From the IMG/VR virus record IMGVR_UViG_3300031957_002643, positions 271,553 to 335,552 of that record: a DNA stretch of 64,000 bases. The stretch is one strand, 5' to 3'. The translations under genes were made by a program, and so were the position numbers. Below, piece after piece: positions 5,027 to 13,542 of the stretch. How positions within the stretch are numbered: the first letter of the stretch is position 1; the number at the start of each line of letters is the position of its first letter. A model generated the notes under the pieces. That model was not told the origin of the DNA, ran no database searches, and saw nothing but the letters and a program-made list of their open reading frames with translations.

Positions 5027-6643
5027 TTAGCGAACAAAGTCCGCCATAACGTTTGGTGCATTGGAATCAAATCCAACAACGTCGAGCATGCCCGGATCAT
5101 CAGGATTTGCAATCGTGAAGCCCGTTGAGGTCATGCCAACAACGATGAGCTTCGCATCGATGCCCATCTTGCGACGGTAATCACGAAGCGCTTCGTGTGG
5201 ATGGATATTACCTGCCCAAGTTTCATTATCCGTGTAGATAACGAAAGCATCAGCTTCGATCTTGTTTTCCATTGCGTAAAGCATTGGAGCAGCACAATCA
5301 GTTCCACCGAATGGAAGATTGCTGATCTTACGGATAACACCATCAAGTGTTGATGCACGACCAAAGTCAAGCGGAGTTACCGCATTAGAGCCACGGTAAG
5401 ACGAATAACGCGAACCACTGGTAAAACCGACAGTGTGTGTAACTGGTTCGGTCTTCATAGTGATAAGTGCCATTGCCGCAGATGCGTCACGTGGCGTGAT
5501 GTTTGAATTCATGATGTTCGAAAACGTCATAGAACCTGAAACATCAAGCGCAAGAAGATGACGCTTTCCAGTCGGAACAACATTCTTGAAAGAAAGCTTG
5601 AATGCATCTTCAAGTGCAGACACAATGTTTCCATTGACCTTCCACGTGTTGCTTCCACGGAAACCACGACCAGACTTATACGTTGTGAGTGCAAGAAGCA
5701 CCGCAAACGGATGAATCATCGAATCGTGAAGCGTCTTCTGATCCGTGAGCCGACGAACTGCCTCCTGTTCAAACTTGGACATCGGCTTGAAAAGATTAAT
5801 CTTTTCAGAAGACATGTTGCCAAGATTTTTGATCATAGCAGTCATCGGCATCTTTTCGAAAAGTGCTTCCCATACCTTTGGATCATTAAGAGCCTCGGTC
5901 GGAAGTGCTTCACGTGGAAGATTTGCTTCACGGATAAGGCCCGGAAGTTCCTTCACAGATGCAGTCTTTGCTTCTTCGTATGCCTTGATGATTGGCGGAA
6001 GCGTTTCGGTATCAACCGGGCGACCACAAATCCAATCAAAGATCACGCGACGTTCTGCTTCTGGCGTCTTTGGATGAGAAAGACGAAGAAGGTCACGGTG
6101 CGTCCAACCATCACGTTGACGATACTTGACCGCTTGGTAAGCGACCTTGTTTGCATCAACTTCGGTATACCAGTTCGCAACTGCACGCTTAAGCGCACGT
6201 CCCCAACCACGGAACTGTTCGACAAATTCCGCGTAATGGAAAAGATGCGTACCAATGCGTGCAACCTTTGGAAGTGCCGCGAGCGCATATGCACGAGTCT
6301 TGTCATCTTGTGCAGCCGAAGCCATAGCAAGAGCGAAAAGAGCAGCATCATTACGGTATGCACGACCGTTCGTGGACACGTCAACAATCATATCGACAGC
6401 ACGAATACCGTCAGAATCAATTGCCTTCTGTACTGCCGAAGCGTTAGCTACGGTAAGTTCACGAGACGATGCGTAGTAGGTTGGTGCATCAGAACCGAGC
6501 ACAAGGAAGCGCTCAAGGCGACCGAACTCATCAAGTGTGAATGAGAAACCGCCAGCATTGTTCTTGGATTGCTTTGGGGAAGCCGCTTCATTTTGCGGCG
6601 TAACGCGATTGCGCGTTCCAACATTACGGTAAGCTTTAGACAT
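5027..6643 (-). CDS. rsr: Ro60 / Rsr TROVE-domain RNA-binding protein
   Basis: NNAGGF, RLERFLVLGS..TYY, KYRQRDGWTHRDLLRL and MPMTAMIKNLG, plus vWA motifs LALDVSGSM, GGTDCAAPM and IYTDNETW. Confidence 0.95.
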   Translation of the reverse strand: MSKAYRNVGTRNRVTPQNEAASPKQSKNNAGGFSFTLDEFGRLERFLVLGSDAPTYYASSRELTVANASAVQKAIDSDGIRAVDMIVDVSTNGRAYRNDAALFALAMASAAQDDKTRAYALAALPKVARIGTHLFHYAEFVEQFRGWGRALKRAVANWYTEVDANKVAYQAVKYRQRDGWTHRDLLRLSHPKTPEAERRVIFDWICGRPVDTETLPPIIKAYEEAKTASVKELPGLIREANLPREALPTEALNDPKVWEALFEKMPMTAMIKNLGNMSSEKINLFKPMSKFEQEAVRRLTDQKTLHDSMIHPFAVLLALTTYKSGRGFRGSNTWKVNGNIVSALEDAFKLSFKNVVPTGKRHLLALDVSGSMTFSNIMNSNITPRDASAAMALITMKTEPVTHTVGFTSGSRYSSYRGSNAVTPLDFGRASTLDGVIRKISNLPFGGTDCAAPMLYAMENKIEADAFVIYTDNETWAGNIHPHEALRDYRRKMGIDAKLIVVGMTSTGFTIANPDDPGMLDVVGFDSNAPNVMADFVR

Positions 6644-6699
6644 TTTCCTTCTCCTTTACGTCTTTTGTGAACTAAGGATTAGGACGAGTCAAGAGGGTT

Positions 6700-6765
6700 G
6701 AATGAACATGTTAGTTGCGGTGGGTGTTTCATCGAAAAAGATAACCCATTGCATCCGGCTCATTC
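6700..6765 (-). ncRNA. Short Y-RNA-like element (copy A)
   Basis: 5' GAAUGAGCCGGAUGCAAUGGGUUAUC pairs with 3' GUUCAUUC; sits in the rsr leader. Confidence 0.75.
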
Positions 6766-6775
6766 AAATTTCATA

Positions 6776-6945
6776 CAGTTGTACCTTAGAAGGATGGACG
6801 TGTTTTTGAAAAACGACGTTTAGACGCTCTAACCGTTGAGCTACCGGCCCATAAATGGTGGGCCAGACAGGATTCGAACCTGTAACCTTCCCTTTGTAAG
6901 AGGATAACCGTCTCTCAGCCGGTCCATCCTTCTAAGATACAACTG
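6776..6945 (-). ncRNA. YrlA-like Y RNA with circularly permuted tRNA module
   Basis: 24-bp terminal stem, GGUUAUC motif, then T arm (CAGGUUCGAAUCCUG), loop-closed acceptor GGCCCA-CCAUUUA-UGGGCC and D arm (UAGCUCAACGGUUAGAGC). Confidence 0.88.
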
Positions 6946-7079
6946 GACGAATGTGTTTGCGACTAGGGGGTGTTGAGACCAATGCTTCTACCAATTCAGC
7001 CACACCCAACAATGTGTTGAGTGACAGGATTCGAACCTGCACTTCTCGGTTTTGATAACCCTATGTCTCCGACTCGTCC
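6945..7079 (-). ncRNA. Second YrlA-like Y RNA with circularly permuted tRNA module
   Basis: GGACGAGU/AUUCGUCC terminal stem, GGGUUAUC, T arm GCAGGUUCGAAUCCUGU, closed acceptor CACUCAAC..GUUGGGUG and D arm UGGCUGAAUUGGUAGAAGC. Confidence 0.85.
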
Positions 7080-7105
7080 GAAATCTTTTGTTCCTCCCAT
7101 TGATT

Positions 7106-7172
7106 GAATGAACATGTTAGTTGTGATGGATGTTCATCATTACCAAGATAACCCACCGCATCCGGCTCATTC
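7106..7172 (-). ncRNA. Short Y-RNA-like element (copy B)
   Basis: Near-duplicate of 6700-6765 (identical 18-nt and 15-nt ends); 5' GAAUGAGCCGGAUGCGGUGGGUUAUC. Confidence 0.75.
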
Positions 7173-7188
7173 GTTGTTCCGTGATATA

Positions 7189-7214
7189 CTTATAGAGGAT
7201 AATAGGGGTGTCAA
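7189..7214 (-). promoter_or_regulatory. Putative promoter for the Y RNA-rsr-pth2 operon
   Basis: TTGACA and TATAAG match this phage's motif, but the spacer is an atypical 14 nt. Confidence 0.4.
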
Positions 7215-7249
7215 CCGGTTTTTTGTAAAAAATCGAAAATTTTTTGTAA

Positions 7250-7278
7250 TTGACAGGAATTCCTCTGTGTCATATAAG
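7250..7278 (+). promoter_or_regulatory. Sigma70-type promoter
   Basis: TTGACA-N17-TATAAG. Confidence 0.8.
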
Positions 7279-7296
7279 TATTAGCACACATCTTGA

Positions 7297-7373
7297 AGCG
7301 GGGTGGAGCAGTCCGGTAGCTCGTCAGACTCATAATCTGAAGGTCGTAGGTTCAAATCCTGCCCCCGCACCCA
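7297..7373 (+). tRNA. trnM: tRNA-Met (CAT), initiator-like body
   Basis: Body closely matches tRNA-fMet, with a 1:72 mismatch; anticodon arm TCAGA-CTCATAA-TCTGA; encoded CCA. Confidence 0.9.
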
Positions 7374-7387
7374 TTATAGGAATGATC

Positions 7388-7588
7388 ATGTCCAAGCATT
7401 CGAATGAACCCGAAGAAATTACGAATGATCGGAAATCAATCCATATCACGATTCCATCAAAGGGATGGAAGACAATTAGTGCTTGTGCAATGATTGTCGC
7501 AGCCATTTCATTCGCAGTTGCGGGCGGTGATCAAAGTTATCTGGCTGGATGGTGTATTCTTGGAGCATTCGTGGCATTGTGGGATTAA
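7388..7588 (+). CDS. Small membrane protein
   Basis: ATG after AGGA; two hydrophobic segments. Confidence 0.55.
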   Translation: MSKHSNEPEEITNDRKSIHITIPSKGWKTISACAMIVAAISFAVAGGDQSYLAGWCILGAFVALWD

Positions 7589-10325: not shown

Positions 10326-10381
10326 TATGCATAACGAAGCACCGCCGAAGGTGCATTGACGATAGTAGCGTGGAGTATGCT

Positions 10382-11515
10382 ATGCCTGTGAATGGAAAAC
10401 CATCCATCCGTGATGGGTTCGTGAAAACGAATACACTCGGATATGAAGAAGAATACGATTACCTCGTATTCATTGGAAGATTTCAACCTCTCCATTACGG
10501 GCATATGCGTGTCATTGACATTGCGCTACAACTCTCCAAAAAAGTAGTTCTGCTCGTTGGTTCGTCCAATGTTGGTCGCACCCTGCGTAACCCGTTCACT
10601 TTTCAAGAACGTTACGCCATGATCGCAACACAATACGATCATGCCATCAAGGATGGTCGTCTCATCATCGACTCAATCGATGATATGATGTATGAAGATG
10701 ACCGCTGGATCGAGCAGGTTCAGACCAAAGTCAACAGCAAAGTTGGCGATACCAAAAATGTCGGTCTGATTGGATGTGAGAAAGATCACACCAGTTATTA
10801 TCTCAGCCTCTTCCCGAACTGGCATAATGTCGGTGTGGAATTCAAGGTTCCACTCAACAGTACCGATATCCGCAAGGCTGTGTTCCTTCAGGACAAGCTC
10901 TGGGATGATCGTGGTTTTGGTGAAACGCAACATGCCAAGAATGAATTCTACAAATTCTTGGACAAGGCGTGCCCGCCAGAAATCGCTCAAATCCTTCACG
11001 CATTTATGTACAATCCAACAGCAGAAGAAATTCGTGAAGAATGGAAGTGGATCAATGAATATCGTGCAAAGCGCCAGACCAGCAATTATCCGGTGATTGA
11101 TATCACTGTTGATGCCTGCGTGGTTCAATCTGGTCATGTTCTGGTTGTTCGCCGCAAGAATTATCCGGGCAAAGGTCTTCTTGCCCTTCCGGGTGGTTTC
11201 TTGAATGAAAACGAAATTCGCGAGAAGGGCATGCTTCGTGAATTGCGAGAAGAAACTTGCATCGATCTCTCGGATACTGTCCTTCGCGCAAATATCGTGA
11301 AAGAAAAAGTTTTCGAAGACCCACACCGTTCAGATCGTGGTCGTCTGATTACGACTGCATATCTGATCAAACTTCAGGATCGCCCGGAACTTCCCAAGGT
11401 GAAGGGTGCTGATGATGCAGAGAAAGCATTCTGGTTGCCATTGTCCGAAGTAAAACCTTCGATCTTCTTTGAAGACCATGGATTCATTATCCGAAATCTC
11501 ACGAGCGGAATCTAA
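10382..11515 (+). CDS. nadM: Bifunctional NMN adenylyltransferase / ADP-ribose Nudix hydrolase (NadM-Nudix, NatV-like)
   Basis: FIGRFQPLHYGH (HIGH-type), LNSTDIR, Nudix box GGF.N.NE....GMLRELREE, GADDA, FFEDH. Confidence 0.95.
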   Translation: MPVNGKPSIRDGFVKTNTLGYEEEYDYLVFIGRFQPLHYGHMRVIDIALQLSKKVVLLVGSSNVGRTLRNPFTFQERYAMIATQYDHAIKDGRLIIDSIDDMMYEDDRWIEQVQTKVNSKVGDTKNVGLIGCEKDHTSYYLSLFPNWHNVGVEFKVPLNSTDIRKAVFLQDKLWDDRGFGETQHAKNEFYKFLDKACPPEIAQILHAFMYNPTAEEIREEWKWINEYRAKRQTSNYPVIDITVDACVVQSGHVLVVRRKNYPGKGLLALPGGFLNENEIREKGMLRELREETCIDLSDTVLRANIVKEKVFEDPHRSDRGRLITTAYLIKLQDRPELPKVKGADDAEKAFWLPLSEVKPSIFFEDHGFIIRNLTSGI

Positions 11516-12087: not shown

Positions 12088-13542
12088 ATGCTTAATAATC
12101 CTATTATCGAACTCATTCTCGCAAACAAAGTCATTTCAACGGACAGCTACAAGTTCTCTCACTGGACTCAGTATCCGCCGAATACGACACATGTTTCGAG
12201 CTACATCGAATCCCGTGGTCTTTCCAGTGAAGTGAAAGATGATTGGGAAGATGAAGTCGTTTTCTTCGGCCTGCAAGGCTTCATCAAACGTTACCTCATG
12301 ACGCCGATCACCATGAAGATGGTCGATGAAGCCGAAGAATACTGCAAGGCGCATGGTGAACCATTCAACCGTGCTGGTTTCGAAATCATCGTGAATGAAT
12401 ATGATGGCTTCTATCCTGTTGAAATTGAAGCGGTTCCAGAAGGAACTGTTATGCGTTCTCACAACGCACAGGTTCAAGTCGTCAATACGGATGAACGTCT
12501 GTTTTGGGTGACTTCATTCCTCGAAACGTCTCTTCTCCGTGCAGTGTGGTATCCTTCTACGGTTGCTACTCAAAGCCGCGAAATCAAAAAAGTCATTGCA
12601 TCCTACATGGATGAAACGGCTGGACATCGTGAAGGTCTCGATTTTAAACTCCATGACTTTGGTGCTCGCGGTGTAAGCAGTGCAGAATCCGCTATGATCG
12701 GTGGTTCCTCCCATCTGGTCAATTTCATGGGGACTGATACTGGTGAAGCAAATCTCTGGCTTCGTGCTCTCTATGGTGAAGACATGGCAGCATTCTCTGT
12801 GCCTGCCAGTGAACACAGCACCATGACGAGTTGGGGTGGTCCTGCTGGCGAGGTGGATGCATGTCGCAACATGTTGGAAACCTTTGCTGGTCGCTTCCCG
12901 ATCATCTCTGTGGTTTCTGACAGCTATGACATTTATCGTTGCATCACTGACATTTGGGGTGGTGAACTGTACGAAGATGTCAAGGCGCTTGAAAAGGTCG
13001 GAAGCAAACTTGTTGTTCGTCCTGACTCGGGTGACCCGACGACTGTTCCTGTTGAATGCATCAAGCTTCTGATGGAAAAGTTCGGGTACACCACGAATGA
13101 ACGTGGTTACAAGGTTCTTCCTCCGTTCGTCGGTGTTCTTCAAGGTGATGGTATCAACATCCGTTCGATCCGCCAAATCCTTGAAAACATGAAGAAAGAA
13201 GGCCTGTCCGCCGAAAACATCGTGTTCGGTATGGGTGGTGCCCTTCTTCAAAAGGTTGACCGTGATACCTTGAAGTATGCGATGAAGGCATCTGCTCGAA
13301 AGACTGATGGTGAATGGCATGATGTCTTCAAGCAGCCGGTCACGGATAAGGGCAAGATGTCCAAGAAAGGCCGTCTGGTTGTTGTTGAAACTTTGGGTGT
13401 TGGTGCTCGTGGTCATCTGACTGTTCGTGCCGATGCCATGCTTTCGACCGACAAGAACTTGCTTCGCCCGGTCTATCGTAATGGGGAACTTCTCATGGAT
13501 GATAGCTTGACGGATATCCGCAAACGCGCTAGTATCCGTTAG
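12088..13542 (+). CDS. nadV: Nicotinamide phosphoribosyltransferase (NAMPT/NadV)
   Basis: TDSYKFSH, LHDFGARG, PASEHS, VSDSYD, VRPDSGDP, QGDGI and FGMGGALLQKVDRDT. Confidence 0.95.
   Translation: MLNNPIIELILANKVISTDSYKFSHWTQYPPNTTHVSSYIESRGLSSEVKDDWEDEVVFFGLQGFIKRYLMTPITMKMVDEAEEYCKAHGEPFNRAGFEIIVNEYDGFYPVEIEAVPEGTVMRSHNAQVQVVNTDERLFWVTSFLETSLLRAVWYPSTVATQSREIKKVIASYMDETAGHREGLDFKLHDFGARGVSSAESAMIGGSSHLVNFMGTDTGEANLWLRALYGEDMAAFSVPASEHSTMTSWGGPAGEVDACRNMLETFAGRFPIISVVSDSYDIYRCITDIWGGELYEDVKALEKVGSKLVVRPDSGDPTTVPVECIKLLMEKFGYTTNERGYKVLPPFVGVLQGDGINIRSIRQILENMKKEGLSAENIVFGMGGALLQKVDRDTLKYAMKASARKTDGEWHDVFKQPVTDKGKMSKKGRLVVVETLGVGARGHLTVRADAMLSTDKNLLRPVYRNGELLMDDSLTDIRKRASIR

Follow-up and report, generated by a model that had tools for sequence, protein, structure and literature searches.

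The 64,000-nucleotide stretch of DNA analyzed here (the window; bases 271553-335552 of the 335,552-bp virus record IMGVR_UViG_3300031957_002643) very probably carries, as judged from sequence comparison, a phage Ro60/Y RNA cassette. Upstream of rsr, the gene of a Ro60 orthologue, stand four Y RNAs, of which two belong to the YrlA (tRNA-mimic) type. The YrlA-type RNAs, module B (7079-6946) and module A (6945-6776), are encoded on the minus strand, as are all other elements of the array and rsr itself, and are divergent members of the known YrlA class. The acceptor of module A ends in a loop of the tRNA-junction type with an encoded CCA, and that of module B is sealed. The proposal as a whole, a four-Y-RNA array upstream of Ro60 with module B sealed and about an even chance that module A is opened, can be held with good confidence.

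The class, its reading as permuted tRNA, its presence in phages and, in Mycobacterium smegmatis, cleavage by ribonuclease P (RNase P) with CCA addition are already published. The structural insight and the loop-opening idea of an earlier note on this DNA are therefore rediscoveries (Chen et al. 2014; Wang et al. 2018). New here is that CCA recurs in the acceptor loops of YrlAs at one specific position, in contrast to sealed loops; such CCA loops may be visible in the supplementary alignments of Chen et al. 2014. RNase P cleavage is currently treated as a peculiarity of M. smegmatis. If RNAs of the CCA type are cleaved, two-piece Y RNAs would be common and the role of the free end would become testable; the recurrent CCA and its contrast with tetraloop-sealed modules make the commonness of two-piece Y RNAs itself testable.

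Class identity and structure of the tRNA-like modules

Chen et al. 2014 (PMC4201824) described YrlA RNAs with T, D, AS and V elements and a GNCGAAN0-1G motif, encoded close to Ro60 in 254 bacteria and in 22 phages. The Rfam YrlA model (RF02553) aligns end to end with module A at 6789-6929 (minus strand) with 40.5 bits (E = 5e-7 over 1.8 kb). This is the best match in the phage genome (E = 2e-8 genome-wide); it passes the E < 5e-5 threshold of the original YrlA paper but stays under the Rfam gathering score of 69. Module B is matched partially (15 bits), and the other weak matches in the genome are tRNA clusters. Both modules are situated 133-436 nt upstream of rsr on the same strand, within the linkage limit of Chen et al. 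2014 (PMC4201824), namely a Ro60 orthologue at no more than 4 kb on the same strand. The cassette is identified by this YrlA match, the same array in related phages, the layout shared with mycobacteriophages and the scores of the short hairpins under the nematode stem-bulge model RF01656.

Relatives of Rsr were drawn from the protein database, where the protein has thousands of homologues, and from contig look-ups. A single-protein search of viral contigs gave no close Rsr relatives, the acceptor motif CCAUUUAU had no exact match among the viral contigs searched, and no cultured phage Ro60 more than 50% identical to that of the window was found. Seven related phage contigs (Ro60 54-78% identical) contain the same array at the same place upstream of rsr, in the order promoter block, short hairpin(s) with GAGCCGRAUG...GGGUUAUC, module B, module A, short hairpin, rsr. 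Sequence, folds and covariation in these relatives bear out the arrangement claimed by the earlier note, two permuted tRNA modules set on a Ro-binding stem, and reveal the YrlA hallmarks: T and D stem-loops, a hairpin between them and a V region before T. Covariation is observed in the acceptor, T and closing stems. The 15:48 Levitt pair also covaries, being A:U in the window and in the relative L012 and G:C in L008, L009, L011, L013 and L015.

On the minus strand, the T arm of module A (ACAGG-UUCGAAU-CCUGU, 6883-6867) is followed by the acceptor 3' strand CUGGCCC (6866-6860), A73 (6859), CCA (6858-6856), the loop spacer UUUAU (6855-6851, with U-1 at 6851) and the acceptor 5' strand GGGCCGG (6850-6844). 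The acceptor hairpin as a whole occupies 6844-6866, and its 7-bp stem GGGCCGG/CUGGCCC is stacked directly on the 5-bp T stem. U8 and A9 come next, then the D arm GCUC-AACGGUUA-GAGC (6841-6826; element 6826-6843), and A15 pairs with U48 (6884). For 6776-6945 the earlier note had given the loop as GGCCCA-CCA-UUUA-UGGGCC, which is exact when the minus strand is read, and tRNA numbering fits module A; it was also right that the CCA is kept in one module only.

The GGUUAUC motif of module A (6909-6903) recurs in all four RNAs of the array and in mycobacteriophage Y RNAs. The hairpin at the variable-arm position (V hairpin, UCCU-CUUACAAA-GGGA, 6904-6889) has an anticodon-loop-like loop of 7-8 nt, constitutes a 16-nt insertion relative to the Rfam model, and is joined to the T arm by the 5-nt linker AGGUU (6884-6888). 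In relatives it is kept as a CUUGUAA hairpin followed by AGGUC. The predicted fold of module A (minimum free energy -76.1 kcal/mol, z = -8.8 against shuffles) has an outer stem of 24 bp and an inner stem, which lead into a five-way junction bearing the V, T, acceptor and D hairpins, and 25 of its 34 predicted pairs show compensatory changes among 8 related sequences.

No tRNA is called by ARAGORN at 6776-7079, neither module has an anticodon arm at the canonical position, and no tRNA gene of the phage has recently donated sequence to either module. As an Rfam tRNA, the upstream half of module A (6859-6925) reaches 26.9 bits, below the threshold of 29, and its D arm is degenerate. A canonical tRNA gene was accordingly rejected, given the missing ARAGORN call and a sub-threshold match confined to that half. 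The V hairpin with its 5-nt AGGUU/AGGUC linker resembles an anticodon arm followed by a class I variable loop; this likeness, together with the 26.9-bit score, fits the published origin of YrlA from a tRNA dimer.

Module B is closed by the stem GGACGAGUCGGAGAC.../...GUCGCAAACACAUUCGUC and carries the GGGUUAUC motif. Its T arm (7040-7024, minus) precedes the acceptor CACUCAA/UUGGGUG (7023-7003, minus), which reaches 8 bp when extended and has the 5-nt loop ACAUU, without CCA. The D arm GCUG-AAUUGGUAG-AAGC (7000-6984, minus) is tRNA-Leu-like, and this half is closest to the phage's own tRNA-Leu genes. The fold of module B is based on comparative data (compensatory changes at 14 of 31 pairs in the window and five related phages), because the single sequence by itself gives a fold no more stable than those of its shuffled versions (z = -0.87).

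The two short hairpin Y RNAs of the array, each ~68 nt long, flank the tRNA-like modules and are YrlB-like. The first (7172-7106, minus; GAAUGAGCCGGAUG...GGGUUAUC...CAUGUUCAUUC; -19.9 kcal/mol) is a paralogue of the second (6767-6698, minus; UGAAUGAGCCGGAUGCAAUGGGUUAUC...CCCACCGCAACUAACAUGUUCAUUCA; -21.2 kcal/mol, z = -3.4). The second reaches 35.8 bits with RF01656, which describes a Y RNA homologue and has a gathering score of 38; the element equivalent to the first matches the same model in relatives, and a short hairpin of L013 (3458-3526) is at threshold with 38.1 bits. Like metazoan and nematode Y RNAs, the short hairpins have a bulged helix, the 5' strand GAGCCGRAUG with a matching 3' strand, and GGGUUAUC. 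They differ in being encoded by a bacterial virus and in a much shorter loop, and the tRNA-like modules have no metazoan counterpart. By the bulged helix, the recognizable strands and the GGGUUAUC motif, the short hairpins appear closer to metazoan and nematode than to bacterial Y RNAs.

Three points count against the proposal. The 40.5 bits of module A are below the Rfam gathering score of 69, mainly because of the 16-nt V hairpin and the longer loop. The GNCGAAN0-1G motif near the 5' end, a contact of Ro60, is present in variants only (GCCGGAUG in the short Y RNAs, GUCGGAGA in module B, ACCGGCUG in module A; GCCGAAUG and GCCGGAUG in relatives), and that of module A, although rightly positioned, is degenerate and deviates at 2 positions. 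Among sequencing runs, the window was recovered in two seawater DNA runs, which probably represent the sample of origin, and in no RNA run.

Salmonella Typhimurium YrlA shares with the modules the adjacency to rsr on the same strand, the end-paired Ro60 stem, the permuted order of T, acceptor, D and V elements and the nucleotides of the tertiary pairs. The crystal structure of the Salmonella tRNA-like domain has been solved, and in that work YrlAs were described as tRNAs in circular permutation whose acceptor loops are closed (Wang et al. 2018, bioRxiv 10.1101/312249); the RNA is modified by TruB and DusA (PMC4201824). Its acceptor is a sealed stem of 6 bp, whereas module A has 7 bp and an encoded ACCA. 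Compared with the YrlA family, module A also possesses the 16-nt V hairpin and the 24-bp outer stem, two such RNAs occur here in tandem, and rsr lacks an rtcBA/RtcR context.

M. smegmatis YrlA resembles module A in its 7-bp acceptor and its position upstream of rsr. RNase P cuts it in vitro, and in vivo it exists as two Rsr-bound halves, the 5' half ending in CCA (PMC4201824). One precursor yields both this RNA and a second Y RNA, and its processing is the model for that predicted for module A. There, however, the CCA is partly templated and CA is added after cleavage, while in module A the whole ACCA is encoded, with a tRNA-like A/U trailer after it. In mycobacteriophages (Bxz1-type, Sparky) one tRNA-like and one short hairpin Y RNA precede Ro60, against four RNAs here, two of them tRNA-like. 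Sparky and Breeniome have the same layout as module A (GGUUAUC, V hairpin, AGGUC, T arm) upstream of annotated Ro genes, but the Sparky acceptor is sealed by UUCG and that of Breeniome is a long closed stem. Phage Y RNAs have also been listed for CcrColossus and Bacillus phage G, and the Ro60 of Thermus phage phiLo binds two phage Y RNAs (Yrl1/Yrl2) together with host PNPase (PMC12135203).

Recurrence of CCA at the tRNA position

In a single module, the chance of CCA at a given offset is about 2%. Its recurrence was therefore evaluated in an RNA-blind survey of 168 Ro60 loci (88 phage and 80 bacterial) chosen by protein only, in which the region upstream of rsr was scanned for modules composed of a T arm, a hairpin and a D arm. 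The survey yielded 81 distinct modules, 69 of which had at least 6 of 7 acceptor pairs. Among these 69, no triplet occupies positions 74-76 more often than CCA (13 modules, against a composition-based expectation of 2%), with an enrichment of P ~2e-9, uncorrected for ancestry. At successive offsets the counts are 1, 13, 3, 0 and 0. The CCA-type modules are spread over six lineages or more, among them several Verrucomicrobia, whose loops read NCCAGAY; GNRA or UNCG tetraloops seal 18 of the 81 modules.

The impression from an acceptor-anchored pattern search agreed with this, but that search is biased by its fixed stem and its matches include real tandem tRNAs (Lys-Lys, Asp-Phe, Pro-Ala, Ile-Val), so that it served as a lead only.

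Among the related phages, the acceptor loop of module A is ACCAUUUAU in the window, where module B lacks CCA, and GCCAUUUAU in L013, where module B is not of the CCA type. In L008 and L009 module A is not of the CCA type, and the loops of module B are ACCAAUCUAA and CCCAUUUAUG, respectively. Both modules have short or GNRA loops in L010-L012. Between the window and L013 the acceptor with its loop is identical at 21 of 23 positions, compared with 58% identity over the rest of module A. Since the CCA is conserved in L013 and enriched among Ro60 loci, it exceeds chance: an encoded CCA at the tRNA position of YrlA-type RNAs is non-random and recurrent, and apparently selected.

Proposed opening of the module A loop and competing explanations

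ARAGORN detects 44 tRNA genes in the phage genome, 10 of them inside the window. CCA is encoded in 43 of the 44, U is found at -1 in 33, and all trailers start with A or U. Adjacent phage tRNAs are separated by A/U spacers of 1-9 nt (e.g., CCA-UUUUUAU-G between tRNA-Arg and tRNA-His), and the module A loop ACCA-UUUAU-G is indistinguishable from these junctions. By its letters, the acceptor loop of module A is a complete pre-tRNA junction with 7 bp, G+1, U-1, A73, CCA and an A/U trailer. Cutting between CCA and an acceptor 5' strand is already needed by the phage, because the maturation of its two-piece transfer-messenger RNA (tmRNA) requires it. By analogy with M. smegmatis YrlA, there is roughly an even chance that the loop of module A is opened by RNase P and 3' trimming. 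The CCA-adding-type nucleotidyltransferase of the phage, the conservation of acceptor and loop in L013 and the enrichment of CCA at 74-76 also speak for opening.

The array would be transcribed as one precursor from a conserved promoter, probably together with rsr. In relatives, binding of Ro60 to the stem and the action of tRNA enzymes on the tRNA-like domain are established. Here the paired 5' and 3' ends of the modules would form the Ro60-binding stem, and the phage Ro60 would bind all four RNAs. Host RNase P could then cut module A between 6851 and 6850, and exonucleases could trim UUUAU back to the CCA. This would leave a Y RNA in two pieces (~90 and ~75 nt) that stay joined through 7, ~10 and 24 bp (acceptor, inner and outer stems, respectively). 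The free CCA end might mainly protect the RNA, or it could be maintained by a CCA-adding enzyme. By analogy with the known systems, the tRNA-like domains could tether Ro60 to a tRNA-recognizing partner or to host PNPase, and the tethered Ro60 could remodel or degrade structured RNA during infection.

Other results weigh against opening. In the closest relatives, L008-L012, the acceptors of module A are closed by short or GNRA loops without CCA, so a free end is not required for module A function in this clade. Six of the 13 CCA-type cases are from Verrucomicrobia, and the enrichment statistic ignores such shared ancestry. Four metatranscriptomes mapped to a verrucomicrobial CCA-type module (L241; CCA 694-696, G+1 700) give a mixed picture. 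Related contigs occur there at appreciable depth, and their variable sites, at 692, 693 and 697, spare the CCA, which speaks for opening. The starts of several whole contigs coincide with 700, but the upstream pieces stop just short of variable sites, as assembly-graph breaks would, and other contigs of the RNA libraries span the loop uncut.

Such loop-spanning contigs would be expected if the CCA loop were a relic of a dimeric tRNA transcript or of tRNA-gene recombination and the mature Y RNA stayed in one piece, which is quite possible. A dimeric-tRNA origin is cited by Wang et al. 2018, and most YrlAs were judged poor RNase P substrates by the authors who described the class (bioRxiv 10.1101/312249). 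The identity of the loop with phage tRNA junctions, the tRNA score of the upstream half of module A, the ARAGORN calls over the T-arm half of several related modules and the GUAA or other short loops of the nearest relatives agree with this view as well. A neutral remnant, however, should decay, and yet CCA is the commonest triplet at 74-76 and rare at neighboring offsets; it is kept in lineages with differing loop flanks; and the acceptor and loop of the window and L013 have remained 91% identical. Moreover, the YrlA of M. smegmatis, with its 7-bp stem, is cleaved in vivo (PMC4201824). A still simpler explanation, that the modules are not Y RNAs at all but decayed tandem tRNA genes or tRNA pseudogenes of a tRNA-rich region, is extremely improbable. 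The ten tRNA genes of the window and the tRNA clusters behind the other weak YrlA matches speak for it, and searches for YrlA are known to pick up dimeric tRNAs falsely (PMC4201824). Pseudogenes would not be expected to retain long closing stems and hairpin acceptors through compensatory changes, ARAGORN finds no tRNA at the modules, their position beside rsr is fixed in eight phages, and they share a Ro-type 5' motif and GGUUAUC with the short Y RNAs and the mycobacteriophage Y RNAs.

If module A is opened, the fate of its CCA end is a separate matter. The earlier note had proposed a chargeable mimic of the two-piece tmRNA kind, and aminoacylation after cleavage, with EF-Tu binding or ribosome entry as possible outcomes, could be imagined, since a free ACCA on a 7-bp acceptor/T-arm helix is a minimal substrate for some synthetases. 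The possibility was raised for M. smegmatis by Chen et al. (PMC4201824), and a peptidyl-tRNA hydrolase gene follows rsr. Two-piece tmRNA (RF01849) has the same order of T arm, acceptor 3' strand, CCA, spacer and acceptor 5' strand as module A, matures by RNase P and 3' trimming within one precursor, and is represented in this phage by a bona fide copy. The permuted-tmRNA model RF04321 aligns to that part of module A, but its 18.8 bits (E = 0.3, gathering score 47) are not significant. The proposal found no support: G3:U70 is absent from module A (G3-C70) and from all 13 CCA-type modules, and the discriminators are A, G, C or U, so that these modules have no common identity set. Module A also differs from tmRNA in lacking a tag reading frame and pseudoknots, in its full D arm and in its partner, Ro60 instead of SmpB. 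A real tmRNA is already present in the phage, the hydrolase gene is not consistently linked to rsr in relatives, and charging has been reported for no YrlA. Alanine charging of the tmRNA type was rejected on the missing G3:U70, and aminoacylation of module A in general is rated unlikely because of this absence, the heterogeneous discriminators and the lack of an anticodon.

The large tRNA sets of some jumbo phages are generally regarded as a counter to tRNA-directed defenses. The tRNA-like modules might accordingly be decoys for host tRNA-targeting defense nucleases or CCA-modifying toxins, a role of the kind also suggested by the earlier note, as they present a tRNA elbow and acceptor, a V hairpin with an anticodon-loop-like loop and, in module A, possibly a CCA end. 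This found no support and is very unlikely: the modules have no anticodon arm at the canonical position, and they are tied to the Ro60-binding stem and rsr in bacteria as well as in phages, as would be expected of a role with Ro60 but not of a decoy peculiar to phages. Opening of module A into a two-piece Y RNA could have a wider meaning. About one fifth of the Ro60-associated tRNA-like modules (in phages, Verrucomicrobia, Alphaproteobacteria and others), module A included, may be built for RNase P opening, with the selected CCA end used and not just tolerated, although this generalization is unlikely. If true, such an end could be charged, bound by EF-Tu or a CCA-adding enzyme, or offered to enzymes attacking tRNA 3' ends, and the surveillance of RNA by Ro60 would thereby be tied, during infection, to the machinery of tRNAs and translation.

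Genomic setting of the array

The record, obtained from seawater metagenomes and bounded by direct terminal repeats, is a complete marine jumbo phage. A divergent Ro60/Y RNA cassette is thereby placed in an uncultured lineage of marine jumbo phages that also encodes a nearly complete set of tRNAs along with a two-piece tmRNA, an enzyme of the CCA-adding type and a peptidyl-tRNA hydrolase. Directly upstream of the first Y RNA lies a promoter-like element (7214-7186, minus) with TTGACA (7214-7209), a 17-nt spacer and AAGTAT (7191-7186); a GGTTGACA...TAAGTAT block also precedes the array in L008-L013. The element is unscored by a generic sigma-70 scan because its -10 fits at 3 of 6 positions only. 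A scan of the locus revealed no terminator-like site between this element and rsr, nor between the elements of the array.

The Ro60 orthologue (538 aa, 6643-5027, minus) contains the Pfam domains TROVE (3e-41) and vWA_Ro60 (1e-66) and a DVSGS metal site. A PTH2-type peptidyl-tRNA hydrolase (5021-4605, minus; Pfam PF01981, 2e-19; PHROG hydrolase, 1e-37) starts 5 nt 3' of the end of rsr and is probably in one operon with it. A PTH2 gene is also near rsr in L012 (~1.1 kb away), but the linkage is not general in the clade. RtcB is absent from the phage genome, and the rsr locus is thus not an rsr-rtcBA repair operon.

The two-piece circularly permuted tmRNA gene (genome C1:126887-127266, minus; also locus L198:437-777) scores 110 bits with RF01849 and is called tmRNA* with the tag ANDNDFAVEARIAA by ARAGORN. 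Its alphaproteobacterial type suggests an alphaproteobacterial host. A CCA-adding-type nucleotidyltransferase domain (PolyA_pol family, genome C1:268034-268396, plus) is encoded in a 441-aa frame ~3.2 kb before the window. ARAGORN also reports two possible suppressor tRNAs, one amber-reading (anticodon CTA, with CCA, C1:254867-254942, plus) and one opal-reading (TCA, without CCA, C1:145422-145493, minus).

Divergent from the Y RNA promoter, an initiator-like tRNA-Met (7297-7373, plus) has a mismatched 1:72 pair and an encoded CCA followed by UUAU. Relatives have a tRNA at the equivalent position. The tRNA-Met is 89% identical to that of Caulobacter phage CcrSC and was the only match in a megablast of the locus against cultured phages.

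The surroundings of rsr vary in two relatives. L014, a jumbo phage with 55% Rsr identity, has the wcaG RNA motif (RF01761, 56 bits, above threshold) at 2352-2467, ~1.5 kb upstream of rsr; in the 950 nt nearest to rsr, short GGUUAUC hairpins were the only such elements seen, and a tRNA-like module was not. L011 has one tRNA-like module instead of two and an IS605 OrfB/TnpB-type gene (6071-7549) directly downstream of rsr. The window further encodes NAD salvage enzymes, an NMN adenylyltransferase/NUDIX fusion (10370-11515, plus) and a nicotinamide phosphoribosyltransferase (12088-13542, plus); these genes are syntenic with the Ro60 cassette in L008-L013, in some of them together with NADAR and GcrA-like genes.

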